Source: Rebecca billardiae RCC1528
Taxonomy: Eukaryota; Protista; Haptophyta
DNA: 64,000 nucleotides
Direction of reading: 5' to 3'
Assembly: GCA_965240325.2 (NCBI GenBank)
Contig: OZ251240.1
Location: 1,178,001-1,242,000 of the forward strand
This document shows positions 9,429 through 55,412 of this stretch, in pieces. A program made the position numbers and the translations under genes. Under the pieces are notes generated by a model. That model had not been told where the DNA came from. It saw only the letters and a list, made by a program, of their open reading frames with translations, and searched no databases. Within the stretch, counting starts at the first letter, position 1. Each line of letters opens with the position of its first letter.

Positions 9429-11936
9429 TCACTTGTGCGAGATGCGCGCGTTCGCGCCCGCCGCGCTGGCGGGTGCGTTGCCGCCGTCCGTGCGCGTGCC
9501 GAGCGCGGCGGCGTCCGGCGCGGGCTTGGGCGGCGCGCCCGTCTCAAGCTCGCTCTCAGCGACGCCGCCGTCGTCCGCCACCTGTGCGAGCACCTGGTGG
9601 ACGAACGCCGCGTCCTCGCCGAGCCGCGCGGCGCGGAACGTCGAGTGCGGCGCGTACAGCCCCTTCTTGCGCATGATCGAGTACGCCTCGGGGTTCGCGA
9701 CGATCGTCGCGAGCAGCCCGAGCCGGAGGTCGGCGGCCATCGACTCGAGTCTGGGCTCATATAAGACGTCGGCGAGCGTGCGCGCGATCGCGTCGACGAG
9801 CAGCGCTCGCGCCAGCCGCTCGGGGCGCTCCCGCTTGCGCCGCTGCCGCGCGAGCCAGTCGCGCGCCTTCTCCTGCACGTGCGCGGCCGCGACGTTCTCG
9901 GTCGCCACCTGCGTCCGCCCGATCCGCAGGATCCGCAGCAGCACATACGCGCGCATGCGCAGCGTGGGTCGTCCGGAGCGCGCGCCAGCCGGGGTCCCCT
10001 CCGCGCGCTCGCGCTCGAGCGCGCTCGCCGCGCGCGCCGTCGCCTCGAGGTACTTGTCGAGCAGCACGGCGATCACCACGTTGCTCATCACGATCGTCGA
10101 GATGAACGTGTACGCGACGAAGAAGAGCTTCGGCGCGTAGTCGGGCACGCTGTGCGCGGCGGAGGCAGTGTCCCCGTAGATTTCGGCCTCGTGCCGAGCG
10201 TCCTCCGCAGCCGCGGACACCTGCCGCGCCATCCCGGACCAGTTGTCGCCGGTCATCGCCTGCCACAGCGTGAACATCGACTTTGCAAAGTTGCCGAACA
10301 GCTGCGGCGCCATCCCGCCGAAGAAGTCCACGGCGATCACGGCGAAGATCGCCATGAGTAATCCGAGCACTACAAACGTGTTGGCGACGCCGGGCATCGA
10401 CGCGAGCGCACCCTCGATAATGACCTGCGAATGGCGGGCGGGCGGGGCGGCGTCGAGGCGCGCGCAGTGCATGGGGTCAGGGTGCGCGCGCGCCGCGCCA
10501 ACGCCGCGCGCCGCCACCGGGCCCGCGCGCGCGCGCGAGAGAGAGGCAGCTGGCTCGAGCCGGCCTGCGCGCGCGCGTGCCGCGCGCCGCCGCGGCGCGC
10601 GCGCCGCGCGCCGCTGCGGTCGCGCCGCGCGCCGCTGCGCTGCACACACCCGAAGCGACTGCACGCGCTTGAAGAGGCGGAAGACGCGGAAGGCGCGGAA
10701 GAGGCGCAGCACGCCCACGCCGGGCAGCCCGCTCGCCTTCTGCGCGACCCACGAGATCGTCACGATGATCACGTCGAACACATTCTGCATGGCGTGGCGC
10801 CGCGCGGCGGCGACGGCAGGGGTGTCGTCACGACCAGTAGGTGAGTGGGCGTGCGCGCGCGCGGCGCCGCGCGGCGCGGCGCGTTGAGCGGCGGCGCGTG
10901 GCGCGGCGCGCGGCGCGCGCGGGTGCGCGCGCGCACGCACCCACGGCGAGCGCCAGAACGCCCTGAACCAGTGCGCGTACGCGTTGAGCGCAAGCTCGGT
11001 GGTGAAGGCGATGTTGAACGCTAACTCCGTTCTCCAGAACGCTTCGAAGAGCGCCGTGCCCGGCTGCGGCCGCAGCTGCGCCTCGAGGGCGGAGGCGATG
11101 AAGTTGCCGAAGATGAGGAGGGCGACGGTGACCTGCGCCTCGGGCGTCGCGTACGCCAGCCGCGCCGCCTGCTGGTACGGCGCGGGCGGCAGCTTCGCCC
11201 ACGCCGCGAGCGCGCGGCCAGACGCAGTGCGCGCGCCGCGCCCGGCGGCGCGAAGGCCCTCAGCCGCCAGCTCGACCGAGTTGCGCCGGCGCATCGCGGC
11301 GGAGCGGGCGGCGCGGCGCCGGCTGCCAGAGTGCTCGATGTCGTGCATCGAGCCCGCCCGCTCGCGCCCGCCCGCGGACGCGCGCTCGCCCGGGCCGTTC
11401 CACGTCCAGAGCGTTTGGTCGATGCGCATGCGCTCGTGTGCGATCTTGGCCGTGCGCTGGATGCGGCGCGTCGCGGCGATGGCGGCGTCGGAGAGGCTGC
11501 TGCGCCGGCGCACGGGCGGCGTGTCGCGCTCGAACTGCCGCGCCGCGCGGCTCGCGCGCATCATCTCCACCACGCGCGCGCGCATCACGTCGGCCGCCGA
11601 CGGCGCCGCCTCGACCTCCTCTGGGCCAGGGTCATCCGTTTCGACGTCCGAGTTGGGCTCGGTGATGCGGCCGAAGCTGAGGTCGTCGCCGAGCTCGGCG
11701 ATGTCGCCGTCGGACAGGTCGTCCGTCACGCCCTCGGCCAGATCGTTCGCGGAGCGCCGCGTCGACCGCCTCGAGCCGATGCCCGAGCGATCGACCGGCG
11801 TGGTCGTTCCGTTCGACCGACCGCCGCGCACGCGCGCGAGCACGCCCTCGGCGCTGCCGCGCGGCGTGTGCAGGCCGACGGGGATCTCTCCCTCGCCACG
11901 CGAGTGCCGCCGGGCCGCCATCACCACCGCCGCCAT
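9429..11936 (-). CDS. Single-domain 6TM voltage-gated Na+/Ca2+ channel (EukCat/BacNav-like); introns 10425-10649 and 10785-10940
   Basis: S1 LIFGNFIASALEAQ, S2 FTTELALN, S3 PW|NVFDVIIV, S4 LRLFRAFRVFRLFKR, S5, pore MFTLWQAMTGDNWS, S6 FFVAYTFISTIVMSNVVIAVLLD. Both introns are GT..AG and in frame (225 and 156 bp). Start codon uncertain. Confidence 0.9.
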   Translation of the reverse strand: MAAVVMAARRHSRGEGEIPVGLHTPRGSAEGVLARVRGGRSNGTTTPVDRSGIGSRRSTRRSANDLAEGVTDDLSDGDIAELGDDLSFGRITEPNSDVETDDPGPEEVEAAPSAADVMRARVVEMMRASRAARQFERDTPPVRRRSSLSDAAIAATRRIQRTAKIAHERMRIDQTLWTWNGPGERASAGGRERAGSMHDIEHSGSRRRAARSAAMRRRNSVELAAEGLRAAGRGARTASGRALAAWAKLPPAPYQQAARLAYATPEAQVTVALLIFGNFIASALEAQLRPQPGTALFEAFWRTELAFNIAFTTELALNAYAHWFRAFWRSPWVRARAHPRAPRAAPRAAAQRAAPRGAARAHAHSPTGRDDTPAVAAARRHAMQNVFDVIIVTISWVAQKASGLPGVGVLRLFRAFRVFRLFKRVQSLRVCAAQRRAARPQRRAARAPRRRAARARAGRLEPAASLSRARAGPVAARGVGAARAHPDPMHCARLDAAPPARHSQVIIEGALASMPGVANTFVVLGLLMAIFAVIAVDFFGGMAPQLFGNFAKSMFTLWQAMTGDNWSGMARQVSAAAEDARHEAEIYGDTASAAHSVPDYAPKLFFVAYTFISTIVMSNVVIAVLLDKYLEATARAASALERERAEGTPAGARSGRPTLRMRAYVLLRILRIGRTQVATENVAAAHVQEKARDWLARQRRKRERPERLARALLVDAIARTLADVLYEPRLESMAADLRLGLLATIVANPEAYSIMRKKGLYAPHSTFRAARLGEDAAFVHQVLAQVADDGGVAESELETGAPPKPAPDAAALGTRTDGGNAPASAAGANARISHK

Positions 11937-37871: not shown

Positions 37872-38918
37872 TCAGGGCCTCACCCGTCTGGCCATCACCA
37901 CGGGTCGTACATGCGACGGCGTCGATACGACGCTGGCTGTGAACAGCGGCGCGGGCAGCTGCGATGGTCGCGGCCGCCACGCTGCCACACTACTGTCCGA
38001 GGGTGTGGGTGTGCTCCTGGTGCGCTTCCGCTGTCGTTTGGCGGCGCTCACTTCTTTGGTGCTCATCACGTCTTGTTCCAGCCCGCGATTGTGCGCACCA
38101 CTCCGACGAAGGCGCTTCATGCCCGCCAGCTTGTGCGCTTCGCATCGGCTGGCGCGCGCGTCGCCCGGCATGCCGAATGACGGCCGCGTGGTGCAGCCGG
38201 TGTGATCACACTTGGAGCTCTTCAGGTCGACCATGCCGGCCAGCTTGTGCGTAGCGCACCGGCTGGCGCGCGCGTCGCCCGGCATGCCGAATGAAGGCCG
38301 CGTAGTGCAGCCCTCGTGATCACACTTGGGGCTCTTCACGTCGACCATGCCGGCCAGCTTGTGCGTAGCGCACCGGCTGGCGCGTGCGTCACCCGGCATG
38401 CCGAAGTTAGACTGCTTGGTGCAGCCCGCGTGATCGCACTTGGGGCTCTTCACGTCGACCATGCCGGCCAGCTTGTGCACAGCGCACCGGCTGGCGCGCG
38501 CGTCGCCCGGCATGCCGAATGACGGCCGCGTGGTGCAGCCGGTGTGATCACACTTGGAGCTCTTCAGGTCGACCATGCCGGCCAGCTTGTGCGTAGCGCA
38601 CCGGCTGGCGCGCGCGTCGCCCGGCATGCCGAAGTAAGGCCGCGTAGTGCAGCCGGTGTGATCACACTTGGGGCTCTTCAGGTCGACCATGCCGGCCAGC
38701 TTGTGCGCAGCGCACCGGCAGGCGCGCGCGTCGCCCGGCATGCCGAATGAAGGCACCGTGGTGCAGCCGGTGTGATCACACTTGGGGTGCTTCAGGTCGA
38801 CCATGCCGGCCAGCTTGTGCGCAGCGCACCGGCTGGCGCGCGCGTCGCCCGGCATGCCGAAGTAAGGCCGCGTGGTGCAGCCGGTGCGATCACACTTGCG
38901 GCTCTTGAGGTCGACCAT
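37872..38918 (-). CDS. EsV-1-7 cysteine-rich repeat protein (7 x 38-aa tandem repeats, 38121-38918), possibly 5'-truncated
   Basis: Unit MVDLKSxKCDHTGCTTRPSFGMPGDARASRCAxHKLAG (C-x4-C...C-x2-H) with a 114-bp period; a partial repeat RCAKLAG lies upstream; basic NLS-like tail KRQRKR. Confidence 0.8.
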   Translation of the reverse strand: MVDLKSRKCDRTGCTTRPYFGMPGDARASRCAAHKLAGMVDLKHPKCDHTGCTTVPSFGMPGDARACRCAAHKLAGMVDLKSPKCDHTGCTTRPYFGMPGDARASRCATHKLAGMVDLKSSKCDHTGCTTRPSFGMPGDARASRCAVHKLAGMVDVKSPKCDHAGCTKQSNFGMPGDARASRCATHKLAGMVDVKSPKCDHEGCTTRPSFGMPGDARASRCATHKLAGMVDLKSSKCDHTGCTTRPSFGMPGDARASRCEAHKLAGMKRLRRSGAHNRGLEQDVMSTKEVSAAKRQRKRTRSTPTPSDSSVAAWRPRPSQLPAPLFTASVVSTPSHVRPVVMARRVRP

Positions 38919-39778
38919 GCCGGCTAGCTTGGCGCAGCGCCTTGGTACCGTCCTTGGCCTTGGCCGGCAAGGAGACCGTGACCGTGTGGACGGACCGCGA
39001 GGATCCTCCCACACCCCCTTGCTCCCACTGTCAGCGAGCCTCTCGGTACAGTTTACGTAAGAATACCTTGAGCTTGCTTTTTAAATTCCCCTTCATAACG
39101 GGCTCCGGGTGATCAGACTGGCGGCCGAAGCCTCCAGCCCTACCCTGGCCAGCCCCCAACCAACCACCACCCTCACCCAACCTCGAACCACTGACCGATA
39201 CACCAAGTGCCTTGACACCACTCCGCTGTGGACACATTCTATGATTTAACGACACAGGTAGGACGACGCGGGTCTCCTGATTCGTCGGCGGCAGTGCCCG
39301 ATCGTCGACACGAAGTCGGCGTTGGTGGCAGAGCATAGCCTGCACCGCGATCGTAAAGCTTGAGCGCGGCCTTGAGCTGCTGAAGCGCGATCCACCTGCG
39401 CTGCGCGGCTCGCATGGACCTGCTGTGCCCCGAGCAAGGGCGAAAGTGCAGGTCCGGATGTCAGCTGGCAGTCTCAGCCGCGGGTAGCAGCTGGTCGAGC
39501 CTGCCCCGTGCTCCCCGGGCGGTCGCGTACGCGCTTGCTGCTCGAGCCAGCTGGCTGGCTGGCGGCGGCTGGCGCTGCGGCGTCGTCCAGGGTGCGCTTT
39601 GCCCGCTGCGGCGACGCCTCCTCGTCGTCCAAGTCGTCGCCCGGGGGCGAGTCTCGGTCATCGTGGAGGGGGGCAGCAGGGGCTGGCGTGGGCGGTGCAG
39701 CGGTCGGCGCCAGGCGCGCCGCCTTGCGCACAGCGTCCACATTATTTTTCGCGCGCTGGCGAGCGCGGGGCCGCGGCC

Positions 39779-41467
39779 ATGGCGGCGGCCAAGCCGAGGA
39801 AGAAGGCGCCCGCAGGCAAGGGCCCCCGCACGGACGGGCGCGGCGGATGGGCGCGGCCGAGCGCGATGGCGTGGGCCGCGCTTGCGGCGGTCGTGGCGAT
39901 CTCGCTGGCTCTCGTGTCGCGTGGCGCCGCGCCGCGTGGCGGCGAGGCCTCGGCCGTGGGCGAGTACTGCTCGCGGTGCGGCGTGCACGTTGCGTTGGGT
40001 GGCACCATGCCGCGCGCCAACGTGACGGCGCTTCTGCGCACGCTCAACGGCTCGGCCGAACCGCCCCTGCCGTACGACGAGTCGCGCGGTGAGCTGCTCG
40101 CGCAGCTGCTCGGCCCGCTGCCGCAGCGCGCGTTTGCGGCTGAGGCGTTCGAATCGACGCCCGTGCACGTGGCGCGCGACCGGCCGGGGTTCTGCGCCGC
40201 GCTGCTGGGCTTCGAGCTGCTCGAGCGCGTGCTCGATCACGGCAGCTCCACGCGCTCGCCCACGCGCGTGCCGCCGCGCAACCACGTCGACGTCTCGCTC
40301 ATGACGCGGCTGTGGCAAAACGAAGACTGGTGGACTGGCAAGTACGGCGCGCGCGACGCGCAGCTGAGTGTGCGCGAGGCGAAGGCCAAGTTCCGCGAGG
40401 GGTTCACGGTGCTGATCAACGACGTGGACCAGCGCGACGCGCGCGTCGCCGCGCTCTCCGAGGCCCTCGAGGCGCTCCTCGGCCACGTCGTCAACGCGAA
40501 CGTGTACGCCACACCGGAGGGGACTCAGGGGTTTGAGGCACATTATGATTCGATGGACGTTTTCGTTGTGCAGCTGGAGGGGCGGAAGGACTGGCGGGTG
40601 TACGCGCCGCTGGTCGAGCTGCCCGACGACGAGCGCAAGTGCAAGCCCACGCTGCGCCAGTTCGAGGCGCTGCCCGCCGCAAACGTCACGCTGCGCCCCG
40701 GGGACCTGTTGTACCTCCCCCGGGGGTGGCCTCACGAGGCGGCCGTGCCGGTGGGCGCGGCGCAGTCGCTCCACCTCACGCTGGGCGTGCTCACGAAGGG
40801 CGCGACGTGGGAGGGGCTGGTGCACGCGGCGATCGGGGCGTGCGCGGGCGGCACGGCGGCGGGCTCCGCTTGCCCCGCGCCGGCGCGCGCCGCCGTCGGC
40901 GGGACGCCGCCCGCGAAGGACGGCGGCGGGCTGAGTTGGGCGCAGCTGCTGCATGCGGCCGTGCGCGCGGTTGCGTGGGGCGAGCACGGCGGCGCGGAGC
41001 GTGGCGGCGGCGGCGGCGGCGGCGCGCGCGCGCTCCGTGGCGCGCTGCCGCTGCACGACGCCGAGTGGGCGCTGCGCGCGCCCTCGCTCGAGCGCTTCGA
41101 GGCCGCCCTCGACCTCCTCCTCCGCAGCCCGCTCGACCTGCTGCGATCGGCTGAGGCGTGGTCGGACGCGCAGCGAAGCTCCGAGGGCGGCGGCCATGAC
41201 GAGTTCATCCTGAGGCCGCGCCGCGCCGCGTGGCGCGCGGCCGAGCTGGCGCCGGGCACGGCGAGCGCGCTCGGCGCGGAGCTGCACGAGCGGCTCCGCA
41301 CCGTCCGCGCGCACGCGCGCGCGCTGCTCGCGCCCGCCGCGCGGGCGGTCGAGCGCGTGCATGGCGAGCGGCTGCGCGTGCGCCGCGCCGCGCGCCGCAC
41401 CAGCCTCGAGTGGCACGGCCAGCCGCAGCCGCTCGGGAACGCCGCCGCTGGTGACCAGGGCAGCTGA
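39779..41467 (+). CDS. JmjC/cupin-4 2-oxoglutarate oxygenase (NO66/MINA/RoxA-like) with N-terminal hydrophobic anchor
   Basis: NANVYATPEGTQGFEAHYDSMDVFVVQLEGRKDW; LRPGDLLYLPRGWPHEA (HxD...H). Confidence 0.88.
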   Translation: MAAAKPRKKAPAGKGPRTDGRGGWARPSAMAWAALAAVVAISLALVSRGAAPRGGEASAVGEYCSRCGVHVALGGTMPRANVTALLRTLNGSAEPPLPYDESRGELLAQLLGPLPQRAFAAEAFESTPVHVARDRPGFCAALLGFELLERVLDHGSSTRSPTRVPPRNHVDVSLMTRLWQNEDWWTGKYGARDAQLSVREAKAKFREGFTVLINDVDQRDARVAALSEALEALLGHVVNANVYATPEGTQGFEAHYDSMDVFVVQLEGRKDWRVYAPLVELPDDERKCKPTLRQFEALPAANVTLRPGDLLYLPRGWPHEAAVPVGAAQSLHLTLGVLTKGATWEGLVHAAIGACAGGTAAGSACPAPARAAVGGTPPAKDGGGLSWAQLLHAAVRAVAWGEHGGAERGGGGGGGARALRGALPLHDAEWALRAPSLERFEAALDLLLRSPLDLLRSAEAWSDAQRSSEGGGHDEFILRPRRAAWRAAELAPGTASALGAELHERLRTVRAHARALLAPAARAVERVHGERLRVRRAARRTSLEWHGQPQPLGNAAAGDQGS

Positions 41468-41768
41468 TCAGCCCAGCAGCGCCGTCGAGTGCCTGCGGGT
41501 CCGACCGGGCCACCAGTTTCTGCACACGCTTGTGATGACAGACTGACTATCGTCTGTAACTACTACTGCTATAACTACTAGCTCTTTGAATTTAATGATG
41601 CGTGCAAGCAGCGCAAGTCAGGCACGCACGGCCTGTCCGCGTCGGTGATGTCCGCCCGGTGTCGCCTCACTATCTTACTCAGACAGCCGCCGACGGAGGG
41701 TGCACAGCGGGCCCCTAACTACGTTGGTTCTACGGAAGGACCGCGGAACGCGGTCATATCGATGATCG

Positions 41769-41890
<122 letters not shown>

Positions 41891-42339
41891 GCGTTATAAC
41901 GGAGTTATAACCGAGTGTGTCGGGAGGCTGGAAAGGCGACGCGCAGCTGGTGGACAAGGGCCGCCATCGTCTTCTAGGTCCTGCAGGTAGTTGTAGCCGA
42001 TTTCCGGAGCTCATCGGCCACGGAGCTATCCTTTATCATCATCATGGCGGCCGCTGGTCCTTTCATATCGGCCAACCACACTGGCTCCTCTATAAGTACC
42101 CGCTCCGCTCCACTATCCGGCGCTCGAGATCATATCCAAGATCATCTTAAGTCGGCATGGCAACGTATGACCAAAGTTCATCAAGCAGCCCACCTATCAG
42201 AGCTCGCTCGATCATCGGTTACACGACCTTTCCGCTTTCGGGCCAAGCTGCTCATCTCTAGGCCACCCCTGCTTGCCTGCGCATCGCCATCAGCAAAGCC
42301 CGAGGTCTCACCTCCTCTGCGTTCCTTGCTTGTGCTCGT

Positions 42340-45153
42340 CGGCGCCCCCAGCTGCGCCTCTTCAGCGGCGACTGCTTCACGGACGACACCAACTTCTCCA
42401 TCGTCGGCGTGGACAGAACGGTGCGCTTTCTCTCCGTCTGGCACCGCGTCACCACCAGCCTCGGCCTGCTCATGGCCATCCCTGAGAAGCGCCAGATCGG
42501 CCAGTCCGCGCTCTGGCTCGGCTGTGACTTTGTCGTCTGCGCTGGCATCCTCGCGGTGCCGCCGGCCAAGATCCTGCGCGCTCTCGTCATCCTGGACGAC
42601 TTGTTGGCGAGCAGGCCGGTGCCCTTCTCCACCTTTCGCGCGCTCGTCGGTCTGCTCGAGCACTTCCGCCCGCTCACGCCGGCGAACCGCACGTTCTTCT
42701 ACGGCCTTTACGCGCACTTCGGCGAGCTCGGCCGCCACCCCGCGCGGCCGGTGCCCATCACCGCCGCGCTCCGCGCCGCGTGCGCGCGCTGGGCCGAGCT
42801 CCTGCGCTCCACCGCGGGCGTGCTCTTCTCCGACGCGCTGCCGGTCCCCGCGACCCGCCGGCACCTGCCGGCCGCGGCGCCGCCTGCGTTCGTGCTCTTC
42901 TCGGACGCCGCCAAGGATGGCGCGCGCGTGCCGTCGCTGGGGGGCTACGCCCACGGGCTCTGCTGGAGCCTGCCCTTGCGCGCGTCGGACCTCGCTCTGC
43001 CGGTGGTCGCGCTCGAGTTCGTCGCGCTGTTCGCCAACGTGCTGATCTTCGCGCCGCGCATTGCAGGCGCCGTCATCCGGCTGCGCACCGACAGCTCTGT
43101 CACCGACCACATCCTCCACAACCTGTCCGCGCACTCCCCGCTGCTGCAGCACGCGCACCTCGCGCTGCTCGACACCCCGGAATGGCGAGCGATCGCCGAC
43201 CTGACCGACTCGGAGTTCCTCCTCTCTGAGATGAACCCGTTGGCGGACGCTGCCAGCCGCGGCGAGTTTGGCGTCCTCGAGCGCCTGTGCGCCCAGCTCG
43301 GCCTACGCCCGACGTGGCTCGCGGTGCCCATCGTGCGCGTGCAGGCGCTGCTTGACGAGCTCGTCGCGCTGCTCTCGCGTCCGCTCGTCCTCGCTGCCGA
43401 CCCGCCCATGCCGCTGCGCGGTGAGCGCGTGGGCGAGGCACGCAACCCGGGGCCGGTGTGGCGGCGCCAGCCAGTCGGTGGCGCGCCGCCCGCGGCGGGC
43501 GCCCCTCGCAGCGGCGAGGACGCAGCGGCATCGGCAGCCCGCGAGTCGCGCAGCACAGGATGGCGGCGGCCGCCGCCCGACGCGCTCTCTCGGCAGTCGC
43601 GCTCGCGGCCGGATCTGGCCCTCGCGCCGGCGCAGGCGCCGGCTCTGCGGGCAGGTGCGCTCTGGCGACGCGGTGCGCATCTCTCGCTTAGCCAGCAGCA
43701 GCGGCCCCCCGGCGGCGCCGCGCCCTCGGGTCAGCCGCCGGCGGTCGTGTGCGCGTATGCTGCTAGCGCGCGCTTCGACTTGCGGCCCCTGCCCGTGCGG
43801 CTCTCCTCCGACCCGGCTGCGCCCTCGCCCGACGGTTTGCCGGCGCTGCCGCCGCCGCCGTTCGGAGGCACCTCGCCGCTCGCGCTCCACCCGGCCGAAC
43901 CGCTGGCGGCGGCGCGCCTCCACGCCTCGCTCGCGCGCGCCGCGGCGGCGGCGGCGCCAGTCAACACGCAGGCCAAGGACGCGACGGACTGGCGGCGCTG
44001 GTTGGCGTACTGCGCGCTGATGGGCACGCCGCCGCTGCGCACCGATGCGGCTGCTAACTCGGGCGCGGACTCGGTAGGCTTCCAGCGCGAGAGTTTCCTC
44101 CTCGCCTCGTTCCTCATCCACACGTACGAGCGCATGCGGCCGCGCCGCCACTCCGACCCGGGCGCGCGCCCGCAGAGCGCCTTCTCTGTCGTGCAGACGG
44201 TGCGCCGTGTCCACCGCAACACAGCCAACATCGAGCTCGTGCGCGCGCCGCTCATCAAGCGCGTGCTCGCGGGGATGCTGCGCGAGTTCGTGCGTCGCCA
44301 CGGCTCTGAGGCGCTCCTCCCGCAGCGCAAGGAGCCGCTGGGGGCCCAGCACCTCCGCGACATCTTTGCGCGCGCCGGCGGCGCGCGCGTGGCGGGGCGC
44401 ATTGTCGACTGGCGTGATCCATTCTGGATCGGCATGCGGGCGTTGCTCGTCACGCTCTACTTCGGCGCGCTGCGCAAGGCGGAGGTCGCGACTGCGGACA
44501 ACGACTCGTTTCACGCCGGCTGCCTATCGCGGGCGTCGCTCACTTGGCGGCTGGGCGGCGTCCTCGTCGCGATGCCTTCCGCGCAGCAGCTGCGCGCGCG
44601 CGCGCGCGGGGATTTCGCAGTGCTTCGCCCGCCGTGCTCCAAAAGCGACGCCTTTGGCGACGTCTATGGCGCCGATCCGATCTACCTGCCCGTGCTCCCC
44701 GGCGATGCGCTCGATCCCGGTGGCGCTCTCGCCGAGCACGTGCTAGCCGACCCGGTCGCGCAGGGCGCGCAAGCGTCCACGCCGCTCTTCTGCTCGGCGC
44801 CAGGCTCGCGCGCGCCGCTGCGGCACCAGCTCGTCGACAGCGTGGTCGACGGGCTGCTCTGCGCCATCATGCAGCCAGCTGACGCACGAAAGTACTCGGC
44901 GCACAGCTTCCGCATCGGCGCCGCCTGCGCTCTTCTCTCGGGAGGCGCCTCCAGGGACCTCATCCAGCGCATCTGCCGGTGGCGTTCGGACGAGTGCCCC
45001 CGCATCTACGCGCGTCTGACCGCCGAGATGTACGCGCAGCAAGTGCTTCGGATGGCTTCCTCGCCGGTGCACAGTCGCTTTGCGGCGGACCTCCCGCCCA
45101 TCGACAACGACGATATCGCCGGCGGCGTGAGCATACTCCTCGGCTCGCAGTAG
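42340..45153 (+). CDS. 5'-truncated RT (FTDD) - RNase H - tyrosine recombinase polyprotein
   Basis: In-frame QLRLFSGDCFTDD (42376-42387), EK..WLG; RNase H FSDAA, LEFVA, RTDS, NPLADAASRG; YR LRKAE, KSD, HSFRIG, RWRS, IYAR. Confidence 0.88.
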   Translation, partial: RRPQLRLFSGDCFTDDTNFSIVGVDRTVRFLSVWHRVTTSLGLLMAIPEKRQIGQSALWLGCDFVVCAGILAVPPAKILRALVILDDLLASRPVPFSTFRALVGLLEHFRPLTPANRTFFYGLYAHFGELGRHPARPVPITAALRAACARWAELLRSTAGVLFSDALPVPATRRHLPAAAPPAFVLFSDAAKDGARVPSLGGYAHGLCWSLPLRASDLALPVVALEFVALFANVLIFAPRIAGAVIRLRTDSSVTDHILHNLSAHSPLLQHAHLALLDTPEWRAIADLTDSEFLLSEMNPLADAASRGEFGVLERLCAQLGLRPTWLAVPIVRVQALLDELVALLSRPLVLAADPPMPLRGERVGEARNPGPVWRRQPVGGAPPAAGAPRSGEDAAASAARESRSTGWRRPPPDALSRQSRSRPDLALAPAQAPALRAGALWRRGAHLSLSQQQRPPGGAAPSGQPPAVVCAYAASARFDLRPLPVRLSSDPAAPSPDGLPALPPPPFGGTSPLALHPAEPLAAARLHASLARAAAAAAPVNTQAKDATDWRRWLAYCALMGTPPLRTDAAANSGADSVGFQRESFLLASFLIHTYERMRPRRHSDPGARPQSAFSVVQTVRRVHRNTANIELVRAPLIKRVLAGMLREFVRRHGSEALLPQRKEPLGAQHLRDIFARAGGARVAGRIVDWRDPFWIGMRALLVTLYFGALRKAEVATADNDSFHAGCLSRASLTWRLGGVLVAMPSAQQLRARARGDFAVLRPPCSKSDAFGDVYGADPIYLPVLPGDALDPGGALAEHVLADPVAQGAQASTPLFCSAPGSRAPLRHQLVDSVVDGLLCAIMQPADARKYSAHSFRIGAACALLSGGASRDLIQRICRWRSDECPRIYARLTAEMYAQQVLRMASSPVHSRFAADLPPIDNDDIAGGVSILLGSQ

Positions 45154-45225
45154 GCCCTGTCGATGCAGGCAGCTTTTCGCTCGTCGTCCTGTCCCGCGGC
45201 CGCTGCTGGCATGAGTGTGCAACAG

Positions 45226-45915
45226 GGGGCAGCCCCATCGCGGCTGCCCCGGGCTTCCAGCCCGACTGACCAGTGGTGATCCGGTTTCGCTGCCTGCGTT
45301 TGCAGCGATGGGCAGCCCCTTCGCGGCTGTCCCGGGCTTCTCAGCCCGACCGGCTGGTGGATGATCCAGTTCCGCAGCATTCATTTGCAGCGGGGGGCAG
45401 CCCCATCGCGGCTGTCCCTGGCTTCTCAGCCCGACTGGCCTGATTCCTTCCGCACACACCTACTGGCTGGCGGGTCGTGTCGTATCGACCGACCAGTGGT
45501 GATCCGGTTTCGCAGCATTCGCTTGCAGCGGGGGGCAGCCCCTTCGCGGCTGTCCCGGGCTTCTCAGCCCGACCGGCTGGTGGATGATCCAGTTCCGCAG
45601 CATTCGTTTGCAGCGGGGGGCAGCCCCATCGCGGCTGTCCCTGGCTTCTCAGCCCGACTGGCCTAATTCCTTCCGCACACACCTACTGGCTGGCGGGTCG
45701 TGTCACATCGACCGACCAGTGGTGATCCAGTCTCGCTGCATGCGTTTGCAGCGGGGGGCAGCCCCATCGCGGCTGTCCCGGGCTTCTTGGCCCGACCGGC
45801 TGGTGGATGATCCAGTTCCGCTGCATTCGTTTGCAGAGCGGGGGGCAGTCCCATCGAGGCTGTCCCGGGCTTCTCAGCCCGACTGGCCTGATTCCTTCCG
45901 CATACACCTACTGGC
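45226..45915 (+). repeat. Minisatellite array inside the YR element (223-bp higher-order period, 7 copies of a ~40-bp core)
   Basis: Core GCAGCCCCWTCGCGGCTGTCCCGGGCTTCTCAGCCCGAC recurs; equivalent positions at 45361, 45584 and 45807. Confidence 0.9.
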
Positions 45916-47278
45916 CCGGCGTGGGTTGTGTGCCAACGCGCTATGCGTGTGCGTGTGCCCTGCACGTGTACAGGTGTCTCAACCCAACGCCCTGGCTAAC
46001 TCCCCACCCACCAAAAAAAAAAACCAAACAAAAACACCCCCCCCCCCACCAACAAAACGACGCCGCATCGCCGTCGAATTTCTGCTGCTCGCTGCGCTTC
46101 CTCATCATTGGCTTCATGACCATGTCCCCTGTCGCCCACCTCCATCCTGCTGCGTCGTCCTCATCATCACATCAACGGGATCACTCCTGCTCACAAACAA
46201 CGGGACCTTGCTGCCACGCTGGCGCAGTCTGCGCGCAGCTTTGGCACCGTCGGCTCAGTCGCTCTTCCCGTTCAGCCAGGGACAAATCCCCACCATGCGC
46301 AAGTATATATATACATCACCATTTCTGCATGGCGTGTATCATCGGCATTTGCTGCATGCTCACACATGTGCTGCAATACCTGCCCTCGCATGCACATCAC
46401 GCAGATTGTGGGTGATGTTCGTCCATACTCAATGGCGTCGCGTCGCTTTCTATGCAGGAGGACACGTGGCGTTATAACGGAGTTATAACCGAGTGTGTCG
46501 GGAGGCTGGAAAGGCGACGCGCAGCTGGTGGACAAGGGCCGCCATCGTCTTCTAGGTCCTGCAGGTAGTTGTAGCCGATTTCCGGAGCTCATCGGCCACG
46601 GAGCTATCCTTTATCATCATCATGGCGGCCGCTGGTCCTTTCATATCGGCCAACCACACTGGCTCCTCTATAAGTACCCGCTCCGCTCCACTATCCGGCG
46701 CTCGAGATCATATCCAAGATCATCTTAAGTCGGCATGGCAACGTATTACCAAAGTTCATCAAGCAGCCCACCTATCAGAGCTCGCTCGATCATCGGTTAC
46801 ACGACCTTTCCGCTTTCGGGCCAAGCTGCTCATCTCTAGGCCACCCCTGCTTGCCTGCGCTTCGCCATCAGCAAAGCCCGAGGTCTCACCTCCTCTGCGT
46901 TCCTTGCTTGTGCTCGTTGCGAAACCCGCCATCCGCCCCTGCAGCCTCCGTTGTGGTTGACGACCTTGTCGTCAGGCCTGTGAGTGCTGAGCTTGCCTGA
47001 GCCAGGGACCTTGCTGCCACGCTGGCGCAGTCTGCGCGCAGCTTTGGCACCGTCGGCTCAGTCGCTCTTCCCGTTCAGCCAGGGACAAATCCCCACCATG
47101 CGCAAGTATATATATACATCACCATTTCTGCATGGCGTGTATCATCGGCATTTGCTGCATGCTCACACATGTGCTGCAATACCTGCCCTCGCATGCACAT
47201 CACGCAGATTGTGGGTGATGTTCGTCCATACTCAATGGCGTCGCGTCGCTTTCTATGCAGGAGGACACATATATATAT

Positions 47279-48837: not shown

Positions 48838-50801
48838 AAACTTTTCTGAGGATAGCGCACCAGCTAAATCCCTTGACCGTCATCCGGGCCGAAGTGGCGC
48901 AAAATGGCGGATGCCCCCTTCGGACGCCCTTCCGCGCCTTCGAGCGGCTCGTGCGCGTCGGGAAGTGCGCCGAAGCGTATCCGAAGCATGCTCCATCGAC
49001 GCGTCGCACTGCCGGGCCCTCGCATGCGAGCCCATGCCGACGTCTGAGTGCGCCTCGCTGCGCACGGTACAGCTTGACGGTACACGGCACGATTGGGGCC
49101 GCGAGCAGCCTCGTGCGCGCGACCGAGCCAGAGGTGGTCGTCAAGAGTAGCACGAGCGGCGGCACACGAGCGGGGCTGGTCGTTGCCGAATATCTGACGC
49201 ACCAATCGACCTCGCCCAGCGCCATCTGCTCGTTTGTGCACGTGTTGGAAAGGATGAGCAGCTGCGTGCAAACGCCGAGCGCGCAGATGAGGCGTGGGCG
49301 AGCGAAGGGGCGGCGAGGGCCGGCGCGTGCGCGCGCGTAAATTCGAGCCTCCCCATACGCATCGAAACACACCGCGCTCGCTCGTCGAGCTGCGCACGGG
49401 TATCGGTGCGCGCGCGCCAACGCGGCGCGCCGTGCACGCGCCCGGCGAACGCACACCTGCTCGCGCGCGCACGCGCACGTGATGGACCGAGGAGGTCGCG
49501 CGACCATGCGCGATGTGTCTGGATGGAGCGTGTAGGAGGTGTAGGCTGCGCTCCGCACGCGCTCCGCCACCGTGCACCGCGCTGCCCCTCGTCCACGCGA
49601 TCGCCGCCGAGCCCAGATTCAAACGCGCGCGAGCCCGCGAGCGCGCCTCCGAGCAGCGCTTGCAGCAATCGTGTCGAAGGCTTGGCGAGAGGCAGATGTG
49701 CATGGCAAGTAGCGCAATGGGGGTGCCCATCACGCACACACACCCGCGCACGCTCGCCGCACCACCTCGTCGTGCCCACGTTCAGCGCGCGGGGCGCACT
49801 TTGCGCCTCGAGCAGCTGCCGAGCGGCTCCCGCGCGCGGCGCGCGCGGCGAGTAGAACTCAGCCAATGGTCCGAGGGCGAGCCGGCCGAGCGTCGTGCGT
49901 GACGCACATGGACCTGGTGCAACGCCGCGTACCACTCGCAGCCACCATCGCGCCCGTACCAGCGAGCTGTGGCCGCCGTCGACACCCCAAAGCAGCCCAG
50001 CCGTCAGTCAGCGCGCGACAGCCGACGAGCGCGCGACGCGCGCGTCCACCACCGTGATGAGCACGGATGAGCGCGCGCGCCCGTGTCGTAGCTCAGGTGG
50101 GGTCCCCCGATCGCACGCACCACCGCGCTGCCACGTCTGCACCCGCCTTGTGGCACCACGCGGGCACGCGCCGGGCAGGCGGCAGAGCCGCCTGCTCGGC
50201 AAACGGTCAGCGCGCAGCGAGGATGGAGTCCGGCGAGGGGCGACCGGAGTGTCCGGCGCGACGGAGGTGGTCCACGCCGTGGTCGCCGACGCGTTCCTCA
50301 CCACCTCCGAGGCCGTGGTGGCCGCCCGGGAGAAGGAATGCTCCCAATCGCACCCTGTGCAGTGCTCCTTTGCGCGTGCATCATGAGCCACACTGAGATT
50401 TCGTTAGCTGGCCCGAATCCGATGATCCGGTTATTCGCCCGGCAATCGTTGCATCGCGGACTATCGGGCCAGCTAACCCTTTCCGTGTGCAGCCGTGCCG
50501 CGCGCGCGAGCTCGGCCACATGCGGCTCTTTGCACATGTGCTGCAGATCGGCTCGTGCTCGACGAGCGCGGCGAGGAGGAAGGTGCGCGCTCGCGAGCTG
50601 GCGCACCTGGGTGTCCTCGCGGCCTCCGAGCAGAAAGAGCGCGTCGAGCGCCGCGCCGCAGGTCACACGGTCGCGATCTCGCGAGCGCGGTCGTGCGAGG
50701 GCGGGCCTCTCCATCGCGCGTTTCTGCGTCCAAACGCGGCCTCCGTGAAATCCGGATGACGGTCAAGGGATTTTGCTGGTGCGCTATCCTCAGAAAAGTT
50801 T
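48838..50801. mobile_element. Non-autonomous ~2-kb TIR element, copy 2
   Basis: Same TIR AAACTTTTCTGAGGATAGCGCACCAGC; colinear with 2351-4333, with substitutions and a divergent block near 50380-50490. Confidence 0.85.
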
Positions 50802-51044
<243 letters not shown>

Positions 51045-51329
51045 TCTACTGCTGCTCAACAGTGCGCCGCGCTGTTCGGAGCAGGAGTCGGACAGAGTAG
51101 ACCGTATAAGGTATTCTGCTCGGCTGAGAGTGAGACGGAGACGCGGACGGCGGAGACCGAGTAGTTTAACTTGAGAGAGAGTCAGAGAGTGTGTGAGCAC
51201 GGCGAGAGCCGCAGAGATCGATCGTCGAGGCGAATCGAGGACGAGCAGAGAAGCAGTCGTCGCGCATCATCGGCTATCAATCATCAATCGTCGTCGTCGT
51301 CCTCATCGTCGTCTGCAGCAGCATCGTCG

Positions 51330-52517: not shown

Positions 52518-52615
52518 CGTCGGGACTCGGGACCGCGTCGGCTGGCGCGACGTTGAGTGACTGATGAGGCAAGTCGGGCGGTGACAACTGGGCGATGGCG
52601 GCCGGCCTCCGCGGC

Positions 52616-55239
52616 GGGGAACTTACAGTCAGACCGTCTGAATCGGCCCCCTCGCTCAGACCGGTCTGAGCGAGGGCCCGATTCAGACGGTTTTTGGGCC
52701 CGCCCCACTGGCGAGCGCGCTGCGGGACGCACCGCGCTGGGGGCGGTGCACACTGCACTCACGGCGCGCCGCGATGTGTTCGGGCGGTGGATGGGGCTGA
52801 ATCGGCCGAGAGTGACGGTGCGATCGGCCGCGATGCGTCTGCCATCACCCAGTGATCTCGTGCGGTGCCAGCTCGCCCTTCGCTTCGTCGCCACTCGCAC
52901 TCGCACCAGTCGCGCGCGTTCATGGCTTGCCGTTCGCGCGCTGTGTTCTCGCGCAGTGTGTGCTTGGCAGCAGGGTGCTCGTGGCCGGTGGTTGCCGTCG
53001 CGGAGGATCGGAATGTGCGCAGCTACGCTACATCCCAGACGCCATGTGCCCGTCCTCGTCGAGCGTTGGAGAGACACGCGTGTCGCGCATGCGCTCGCGG
53101 AAGCAGGCTGCACAGCGGCGCGCGGGCCTGGCTGCGCGCGCATGACAAGGTGCACCACACAGCTGCCCCCGCCATGAGCACCAGCTGTGTACGCACCTCT
53201 TTCGTGTTGTCTGATCCGCCAGGCCGCCACGGCGCAGAGACTGCGTGCGTGAGACACCGACAGTCAGCGGCCACGGCGCACACAGGTCACTGGCACATGC
53301 CAATATGCCATGGCGTGCAGCAGCTGATGCAGCCGTTGCTGCAGCTTCGATTGATGAAACAGCAGCAGCGCCGGTGGCAGTCACCCCAATCGCTGCCACT
53401 GGCACACCCGTACTCGCCAACAGCACTCGCAGCCCTTGCACCTCCGGCAGCTGTGGCACGATGCTCGGCTGAGCGGCGGCAATAGGCACTGTCGTCCGAG
53501 CAGCCGCGCGCGCGCTCCTTCGCGGGCGCGCTGTCGCGGGAGTGCTGCTCCAAGGACCAGCAGCTGGTGCAGATGTTGCGGCTGAGACAGCAACTGCTGT
53601 TGCTCGTGTTGGTAGCCTCAACGCAGCCGTACTAGCGTTATGAGGGGAGATGACTTGTGGAATGGGAATTGCTGCAGCCACTTTTTATTCCGCCATTTAT
53701 TTTTATTAAAAGCAGCTTGCAGTTGCAGCAGAGTCAGAGACTTAGCGTGTCAGAAGCTGTCCCGCAGGGCTCAACTCGTCACGTACAGCGTCGGCGCTCG
53801 GAGCCTCGGGAGTTTGCACCAACCGGGCGTGGTGGGCGTGTCCCGCGCGGCGCGCAGCGCAGCGCTGTACGTGGGCGAGACAGCCGCGTCCGCGTCTCGC
53901 ACTTCGGCGGCGGTGCCGAGGGCGGAGGCCGCCCGCCGCGTGCCTGACGGCAGCGCCTCAAGCAGCGCAGTCCCATGCGCATGCAGACGGGTGCGACGGC
54001 AATGGCGGTGGGTTTCGCAACGTGCACAGCGTCAGAAGCTCGGCACCTGATCCGCCCAGCTGCAGCAATAGCACCATCGGTCTGGCGCCTGGCGCTCAGT
54101 GGGCGGCGTGTCGGGCGGATGCAGATGCACTTGCCGTCTGAATCAGGACGCCGGGCATGCGTGCCGAAGCAGTTCGCCCCAGCGCGCGCACTCGCAGAGT
54201 GAGAACGGCCGCCCTGCCGGCCGGAGGCCAATGCACTCGCCTGGCGGCTGCCGGCGCACGGTAGACCAGGTCAAACGTAAGCACCCGAAACCACCACCAC
54301 CACGGCGGTGGTGACCGAGAGCACGACCACGGGCGGTGGCGCAGCCGATGTCGCGAGCGTGAGCGCAAGCGTGGCCGTGAGCAAGGCGAGCAGCGTGAGC
54401 GATGCGCGGAGCGATCGCGCCCGCCCTTCCGACGAGGAGAGGGCTTTATTGCGCAAGAGGTCCCCAGCGGTAGGTGGCAGCGATGTCGCGACATCGCTGA
54501 GCGCACCGACGTTGCCAGCCGGTCGACGTGGCCAGAGAAAGCTGTGAGCTGGATTGTTGCCGCAAGCAACCGTGTCAGCTGTGGCCGCTGACTGTCGGTG
54601 TCTCACGCACGCAGTCTCTGCGCCATGGCGGCCTGGCGGATCAGACAACACGAAAGAGGTGCGTACACAGCTGGTGCTCATGGCGGGGGCAGCTGTGTGG
54701 TGCACCTTGTCATGCGCGCGCAGCCAGGCCCGCGCGCCGCTGTGCAGCCTGCTTCCGCGAGCGCATGCGCGACACGCGTGTCTCTCCAACGCTCGACGAG
54801 GACGGGCACATGGCGTCTGGGATGTAGCGTAGCTGCGCACATTCCGATCCTCCGCGACGGCAACCACCGGCCACGAGCACCCTGCTGCCAAGCACACACT
54901 GCGCGAGAACACAGCGCGCGAACGGCAAGCCATGAACGCGCGCGACTGGTGCGAGTGCGAGTGGCGACGAAGCGAAGGGCGAGCTGGCACCGCACGAGAT
55001 CACTGGGTGATGGCAGACGCATCGCGGCCGATCGCACCGTCACTCTCGGCCGATTCAGCCCCATCCACCGCCCGAACACATCGCGGCGCGCCGTGAGTGC
55101 AGTGTGCACCGCCCCCAGCGCGGTGCGTCCCGCAGCGCGCTCGCCAGTGGGGCGGGCCCAAAAACCGTCTGAATCGGGCCCTCGCTCAGACCGGTCTGAG
55201 CGAGGGGGCCGATTCAGACGGTCTGACTGTAAGTTCCCC
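52616..55239. mobile_element. Non-autonomous Mutator-like element (MULE) with 659-bp TIRs
   Basis: 52616-53274 is the reverse complement of 54581-55239; ends GGGGAAC...GTTCCCC; TSD GCCTCCGCGGC at 52605-52615 and 55240-55250 (9 bp if the termini are read one base wider). Confidence 0.92.
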
Positions 55240-55412
55240 GCCTCCGCGGCCGGGTGACAGCCCGAGGCTGGCCAAGCGCGCGAGATTGATTCGTCACTAT
55301 CCCAGCAGGCACCGACTAAAGTTTACTGATCAACAAGCCTTGCTACCGTACAGTTTCAAGTTACTAAAGGCATGAGTACTGAGCTGATTGTTGAGTCAGC
55401 TCGGGCCGGAAG

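Follow-up and report, generated by a model that had tools for sequence, protein, structure and literature searches.

The retroelement copy in the window

The window analysed here, 64,000 nucleotides of Rebecca billardiae RCC1528 (Haptophyta; contig OZ251240.1, positions 1,178,001 to 1,242,000), contains a retroelement copy of 5.4 kb. Its single open frame encodes a remnant of a reverse transcriptase (RT), an RNase H domain (RH) and a tyrosine recombinase (YR), and between the last two lies a short motif ending in NPGP, which recalls the 2A, or StopGo, peptides. The copy carries split direct repeats: by self-BLAST, 41888-42339 equals 46466-46917 at 99.6% and 46202-46465 equals 47005-47268 at 100%. 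Judged by this repeat layout and by the domain content, the element is a YR retroelement of the PAT/Ngaro layout. The G+C content around the window is about 68-70%. The features of the copy are the following.

41888..47268, plus strand: full extent of the retroelement copy, 5'-deleted and non-autonomous, its split direct repeats in the order A1 - internal - B1 A2 B2 (self-BLAST, other genome copies)
41888..42339, plus strand: repeat A1, matching the first 452 bp of A2 (self-BLAST)
42409..45153, plus strand: single open frame of 914 aa (stop included), with RT remnant, RNase H, motif, linker and YR
42409..42879, plus strand: RT remnant (after motif C, thumb/connection); fingers and palm are missing from this copy
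42880..43380, plus strand: RNase H domain (AlphaFold2, Foldseek, invariant D..E..D..D and DA.SRG in alignments A1 and A3)
43405..43848, plus strand: predicted disordered low-complexity linker with the motif near its start (AlphaFold2)
43414..43455, plus strand: junction motif
43936..45150, plus strand: YR region of about 400 aa, an N-terminal helical part and a catalytic domain with ALRKAE, HSFRIG and RIYARL (PF00589, jackhmmer)
45263..45931, plus strand: tandem array of three 223-bp units with 92-95% identity, within the element's 3' non-coding part
46202..46465, plus strand: repeat B1 (self-BLAST)
46466..47004, plus strand: repeat A2, with the 452 bp common with A1 plus 87 bp up to B2 (self-BLAST)
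47005..47268, plus strand: repeat B2 (self-BLAST)

A preliminary description of this DNA had proposed that RNase H and YR lie in one stop-free frame, which is indeed the case, and that RT/RNase H as a whole is joined to the recombinase. For the window copy only the RNase H/YR fusion holds, since this copy is defective: its frame opens right after RT motif C (FTDD) and a complete RT is absent. At this point fuller copies read ...GDCFTDDTNFSIVG-VDRTV.... The complete arrangement was found in another genome copy, L034 (G000:C33, contig C33), as an intact RT-RH-YR frame of 1286 aa, of which the window frame represents residues 373-1286. In this frame the RT motifs LTDD and FTDD stand at residues 242 and 362, the RNase H domain at about 530-696 and NPGP at 718-721; the linker extends to about 880 and is followed by the YR, with HSFRIG at 1204 and RIYARL at 1237. 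Only five copies in the genome (72 Mb) bear a YR, all with an identity of 97% or more.

Regarding the domains, the RT is recognized by LTDD and FTDD in the full copy and by matches of relatives to Pfam RVT_1. The best matches of the RNase H part in the Protein Data Bank (PDB) by Foldseek are RNase HI/H1 and retroviral RNase H, from human immunodeficiency virus (HIV) and murine leukaemia virus (MLV). The C-terminal part of the window frame matches Pfam Phage_integrase PF00589 with E 2.4e-5, below the gathering score, and the HxxR and the downstream Tyr are present. By jackhmmer, this region is tied to the YR regions of relatives with E from 1e-116 to 1e-151, and several of these relatives pass the Pfam threshold; a sequence search of the YR region against the PDB gave no match.

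Position and context of the junction motif

The motif reads LRGERVGEARNPGP (family core G-x-R-[VFY]-G-E-A-x-[N/H]-P-G-P), with the NPGP codons at 43444-43455 on the plus strand. The candidate StopGo site would lie between the Gly codon (43450-43452) and the Pro codon (43453-43455). Residues 500-912 of the full L034-type frame were modelled by AlphaFold2 with 57 aligned relatives. In this model the predicted local distance difference test score (pLDDT) exceeds 95 for the RNase H domain, whose last helix extends to about residue 695; the motif core occupies residues 714-721, so the motif begins about 19 residues downstream. Residues 705-852 have a pLDDT below 50, and confident helices resume where the YR region starts. 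The location first described for NPGP, just past RNase H and ahead of a disordered linker, is thus confirmed. A structural role of the motif docked on RNase H was also considered and rejected, because in the model the motif lies in the stretch with pLDDT below 50 and is not docked.

Could NPGP have arisen by chance in a G+C-rich frame, rich in Pro and Gly? Taken alone it is at chance level, with one occurrence in the six-frame translation of the window for 0.66 expected from composition. The search for longer patterns in 186 related proteins (273,346 residues) gave a different picture: G[ED]A..PGP was seen 12 times for 0.08 expected, always in the linker after RNase H, [NH]PGP 21 times for about 5 expected (17 of them in this linker) and GD[VIL]..[NH]PGP 6 times for 0.004 expected. 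Although NPGP by itself is not significant, the 12-residue core is kept at the homologous position in distant relatives, and on this ground chance is refuted, the probability left to it being negligible.

Conservation of the motif among relatives

An RT/RH search of a representative library retrieved about 958 proteins at E ≤ 0.001, and the best 150 of these were examined; a word-indexed search with RT/RH returned 44 relatives. Trees were made with FastTree only, and the metagenomic proteins among the relatives may include dead copies. The relatives are mostly proteins of 1200-2200 aa from marine and other metagenomes, 29-46% identical, and one of them is labelled Prymnesium sp.

We observed the GEA-type core 20-70 residues past RNase H in four to five separate lineages that are 29-59% identical. 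It is carried by P0059 and P0186 (twice in each), P0060, P0111, P0062, P0034, P0037, P0039, P0041, P0043 and P0116, and by three families within the genome; the metagenomic carriers are 29-40% identical in RT/RH. PGP is kept in 14 of the 18 GEA-type instances and N or H precedes it in 13. Within the linker, the only columns invariant in alignment A1 are the G, A, G and P of the motif, this first Gly being the one at position 12 (p12) in 2A numbering. A word search for further GEA-type proteins gave P0059 and P0186 only, and a metagenome scan with a narrow alignment gave 2 loci. On the RT/RH tree the GEA label requires 4-5 changes, on the YR tree 4, which indicates that the motif is old or recurrent and does not belong to one young clade. 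A linkage of the motif to the YR module rather than to RT was considered and set aside, since the YR tree, with its 4 changes, fits no better.

Two subfamilies within the genome allowed a comparison at the DNA level. As far as the PGP codons, a length of 1047 nt, they are 96.8% identical, and the figure is 83% for the 236 nt that follow; within the motif they differ by two synonymous changes and by an R to S replacement at the x position. By this comparison, constraint stops at PGP. The expectation that GxRVGEAxNPGP would be kept at the RNase H/YR boundary while the flanks diverge was therefore borne out, in the relatives as between these subfamilies. From the alignments we regard the motif as a real, conserved junction motif, the local form of an old, selected one in a clade with (DNMT)-RT-RH-linker-YR in one frame, where DNMT stands for a C5 DNA methyltransferase.

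The second of these subfamilies, 95% identical (P0001, L032, L056), has a long N-terminal extension followed by RT/RH, and its motif is RVGEASNPGP. Its frame stops 17 codons past the motif, with tandem repeats in place of the YR. In L032 (2475-3980, minus strand), as in L056 and other copies of this subfamily, the tandem repeat that replaces the YR reads PVTFVGTAFVGT in one frame. In a third family, L055, 59% identical, the motif is GVRFGEATHPGP and the frame ends 15 codons later; an 86-nt palindrome (L055, 6660-6744) lies exactly at the end of this RT/RH frame, which is probably a truncation. No genome copy was found that combines the N-terminal extension of about 600 aa with RT/RH and YR, which raises the idea that the two deletion forms might complement each other.

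Since these two families stop 15-17 codons after PGP, we considered that the motif could be the C-terminal tail of RT/RH. This was rejected: the 95% subfamily is a recent deletion derivative in which the DNA after PGP is decaying, the copy of the 59% family is probably truncated, and genuine RT/RH-only relatives stop before the slot occupied by the motif.

The fused frame and near-canonical 2A cores at the same junction

A YR follows in the same frame in 100 of the 146 relatives with a near-complete RT/RH and in 100 of the 124 that continue for at least 60 residues past RNase H. Many relatives are single frames of the order DNMT-RT-RH-YR or RT-RH-YR. Among the 22 relatives, in at least six clades, that end less than 60 residues past RNase H, no such motif was found; in P0120 and P0010 the stop after RT/RH is genuine and lies well inside the contig. 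The absence of the motif where the RT/RH frame ends early indicates that it goes with the fused junction and not with RT/RH function.

In other lineages the same junction carries near-canonical 2A cores, namely LLFTCGDVEHHPGP, LLLTFGDVESHPGP and a doubled LIALCGDVHPHPGP. The junction reads MMVMLLFTCGDVEHHPGP in P0036 and P0198, LLLTFGDVESHPGP in P0139, GD[LV]xxHPGP in P0035 and P0040 and GERIHPHPGP in P0112; in P0152, P0200 and P0205, LIALCGDVHPHPGP occurs twice, 176 residues apart. The YR was found 80-165 residues downstream in all six proteins scanned (P0035, P0036, P0040, P0112, P0139 and P0152). In addition, the 16th position from the terminal Pro is occupied by Trp in seven members of the DNMT-bearing clade, P0034, P0037, P0038, P0039, P0041, P0043 and P0116, that is, six of the GEA type and P0038.

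Some further observations concern these relatives. In P0152 the two GL[ST]Nx[AE]LIALCGDVHPHPGP copies occupy residues 836-845 and 1012-1021, between RNase H and YR (also in P0200 and P0205; L061), and they enclose a small segment, an arrangement also seen for the tandem 2A sites of some viruses. The metagenomic contig L060, which holds a GDVEHHPGP element, repeats its first 300 nt (1-300) at its end (9943-10242), so that the repeating unit is 9942 nt long; in the assembly the element thus has a tandem or circular form. A C5 DNA methyltransferase stands in the Pol frame of L062 (P0120), P0010, P0026, P0035, P0037 and P0043. P0120 also has a NADAR domain, and P0010 has a separate open reading frame (ORF) of 723 aa upstream of its DNMT-RT-RH frame.

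Comparison with known 2A peptides and retroelements

Class A StopGo/2A peptides (F2A from foot-and-mouth disease virus, T2A, P2A; PMC12846837) end in NPG|P, as the window motif does. The motif also has the N, rarely H, of class A at p16, the two residues known to work there (PMC12338488, PMC12846837), and G, one of the residues D/G/C/N, at p12; in natural sites G is as common as D at this position, and p15 is variable (PMC12846837). Relatives of the window element use H at p16. This residue and H at p14 are rare natural variants that are more than 95% active in their own context (PMC12846837). As in class A, the peptide is part of a polyprotein and lies in a disordered segment that joins two functional domains. 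The window motif lacks the Leu-rich p4-p10 of class A and is proline-rich and basic instead; it also departs from class A at p13 and p14, as discussed below.

Its upstream part resembles motif 3 StopGo, PAPRLV + G(V/I)EPNPGP, for which environmental virus-like sequences are the only known source (PMC12846837). Both are proline-rich without helix propensity, with Arg followed by a hydrophobic residue (-8) and a Gly (-7), and both come from an environmental or protist setting. The likeness is judged by the published description, and the window core after Gly is E-A-x, not (V/I)-E-P. Class B peptides, Wxxx(L/V)xxEG(I/V)Ex(N/H)PGP, are reported from double-stranded RNA viruses, ticks and dinoflagellates (PMC12338488). 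They have in common with the motif the N/H before PGP and the G at -7 and, with the seven relatives named above, the Trp at position 16, which is invariant in class B. The window element has Met at this position (PMPLRGERVGEARNPGP), and [VFY]GEA stands where class B has its central EG(I/V)E block.

Documented carriers of 2A-like peptides are RNA viruses, non-LTR retrotransposons (L1Tc, Ingi, CR1, L2, Rex1; PMC3708506), one Ty3-like element (bioRxiv 10.64898/2026.06.17.732966) and assorted RT-bearing contigs. The retrotransposon cases have in common with ours a 2A-type peptide in a retroelement polyprotein, but they lie mostly at the N-termini of ORF1p/ORF2p and have canonical cores, whereas here the element is a YR retroelement and the site lies between RT/RH and the recombinase. 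PAT/Ngaro-type elements of the DIRS order and SymbioDIRS-Dnmt3 (PMC5890265) resemble the window element in their A-internal-B-A-B split direct repeats and in their divergent RT, RNase H and phage-type tyrosine recombinase, and the relatives in their C5 DNA methyltransferase in the Pol frame. They are described with the YR in a separate ORF, whereas here it is usually fused behind a long disordered linker: the window copy, L034 and 100 relatives each have a single frame. Full-text literature searches found no papers joining NPGP, 2A-like or StopGo with tyrosine recombinase, DIRS or Ngaro.

Does the motif separate the recombinase from RT/RH?

The best single explanation, in our opinion, is that the motif acts during translation at its Gly-Pro bond in the StopGo/2A manner. 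The nascent RT/RH chain ending in ...ARNPG would be released and the ribosome would resume from the proline, giving a separate linker-YR protein; the efficiency might be partial, in which case fused and separate products would coexist. That an E-A core could skip a peptide bond is what we infer from the comparisons above. We give a probability of about 45% to StopGo-type separation, for which the evidence on the two sides roughly cancels.

In favour of StopGo-type separation, the 12-residue core is kept in distant lineages, N or H is preferred before PGP, near-canonical 2A cores stand at the homologous junction of other lineages, and the class B hallmark Trp occurs in seven relatives. Furthermore, the upstream part in the window resembles motif 3, the motif lies in a predicted disordered stretch after RNase H, constraint stops at PGP and the motif is found only at fused junctions.

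Several observations weigh against it. The V/I at p13 and E at p14 of class A are replaced by E13 and A14 in the window and in all GEA-type relatives, which sets the octapeptide GEARNPGP apart, at both positions, from the core (D/G/C/N)(V/I)ExNPGP of the peptides that have been tested. In deep mutational scans of F2A and P2A, V13 tolerated I only, and substitutions of E14 fell below the activity threshold, with the exception of E14H in P2A (bioRxiv 10.64898/2026.09.24.754024); p14 is also nearly always E among about 2,500 viral octapeptides (PMC12846837). The requirement for E14 is nevertheless not absolute, since two natural class X peptides with Ala at this position are 74% and 39% active. 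Key positions of the motif vary among relatives, with HTGP in P0077, KPGP in P0060 and IPGP in P0038, and the first of the two tandem copies in P0059 and P0186 has NEGP. The fused RT-RH-YR frame is the norm of the clade, hence the fusion is not special and needs no special explanation. Moreover, a search of sequencing runs found no RNA runs holding the element, its one weak match, stored as contigs (12% of sampled words), not being on record as RNA.

The same slot is also variously filled. Among the 100 fused relatives, 29 have [FY]SSDxxGDGP there, 7 have ACEEADAV and 49 none of the motifs searched for, and the GDGP-type and ACEEADAV lineages interleave with the GEA type on the tree. This variety and interleaving indicate that the general function of the slot does not need PGP; by the present rules, a 2A identity of the GDGP-type motif is impossible. 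In a 57-sequence alignment only the terminal Pro, usually after Gly, is at least 90% conserved, in Pro-rich linkers that align loosely. The carriers of [FY]SSDxxGDGP include P0002, P0004, P0005, P0007, P0025, P0046, P0050, P0054, P0057, P0104, P0110, P0130 and P0131, among others; their motif is often preceded by a basic cluster, and further lineages have ACEEADAV or GVFNPNLIGDQP.

A serious contender, although we would bet against it, is that the motif is a short linear motif of the linker without any recoding function: a docking site for a host factor or a protease, a processing site, a localisation signal, or a plain Gly-Pro translational pause that would let RT/RH fold or bind its own RNA. 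Basic residues often precede the motif. In that case its resemblance to 2A would be incomplete and a coincidence, or the motif would be the material out of which a few lineages developed true 2A sites. The filling of the slot by other motifs in most relatives, the interleaved tree, the weak conservation beyond the terminal Pro and the variation of p16 and P17 in some GEA-type members all speak for this, as does the position of the E-A core outside the tested StopGo sequence space. In addition, for most 2A-like peptides of retrotransposons a 2026 preprint finds a reduced protein output instead of skipping. However, such a linear motif leaves unexplained the near-constant N/H before PGP and the GDVE-x-HPGP cores with hydrophobic upstream stretches at this junction in at least three other lineages. 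Furthermore, no partner, protease or signal can be named for it, the AlphaFold2 model has no docking of the motif onto RNase H, and the alignment of Pro-rich linkers may overstate the common Gly-Pro.

It is improbable, by our estimate, that the motif is a relic, once of 2A or other type, that drifted from V-E to E-A, is now inert and persists only through young copies. The near identity of all the YR-bearing genome copies would fit with this, and so would the defective state of the window copy and the lack of a genome copy with the long N-terminal region, RT/RH and YR together. Yet lineages with an identity of only 29-59% have the same E-A core, while the residues flanking it are not kept, and the changes between the two subfamilies within the motif are synonymous or at x, while 17% of the next 236 nt differ.

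The reading of the motif as a 2A variant, already proposed in the preliminary description, thus stands in part: conservation and the near-canonical cores of sister lineages sustain it, whereas the fusion norm, the mismatch at p13 and p14, the variants at the PGP positions and the GDGP-type slot detract from it. We rather doubt the more far-reaching proposal, in which GEA-x-[N/H]-PGP would be a new active class of StopGo core with E at p13 and A at p14. According to it, a clade of protist YR retroelements would release its recombinase from RT/RH by skipping at a conserved Gly-Pro slot, its lineages lying along a range from pause to skip (GDGP, GEAxHPGP, GDVExHPGP). The motif is nonetheless a candidate new core, in a retroelement class that the papers searched have not yet linked to 2A, and an undescribed recoding class is possible.

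Surroundings of the element

Immediately upstream of the element there is a host gene, an ORF on the plus strand (39599-41467) with JmjC (PF08007, E 1e-28) and cupin-like domains. At 41756-41880 and 50789-51060 of the window there are long (TA)n/(TG)n microsatellites. A microsatellite adjoins the 5' end of the element, and in copy L031 one lies at the 3' end, which points to TA/TG repeats as the site of insertion. In addition, a 114-bp unit is present in seven tandem copies at 38004-38987, and an inverted repeat of 682 nt, 99% complementary, has its arms at 52602-53283 and 54572-55253, with 1288 nt between them; it has the appearance of a further mobile element that carries long terminal inverted repeats.

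Significance for YR retroelements

If the GEA-type core is active, the sequence rules of StopGo would be widened at two core positions thought to be the least tolerant, and tyrosine-recombinase retroelements would join the users of 2A. It would also explain how a free recombinase is obtained from a fused Pol frame in elements without a protease. If it is inactive, it would be a conserved linker motif in a little-studied clade of retroelements. The GDVE-x-HPGP relatives alone look like a use of 2A in YR elements, described by no paper in the literature searched. The natural variants present at one homologous junction (GDVE-HPGP, GDVH-HPGP, GEA-x-[N/H]PGP and GDGP) may serve as a ready panel for the requirements of ribosome skipping.

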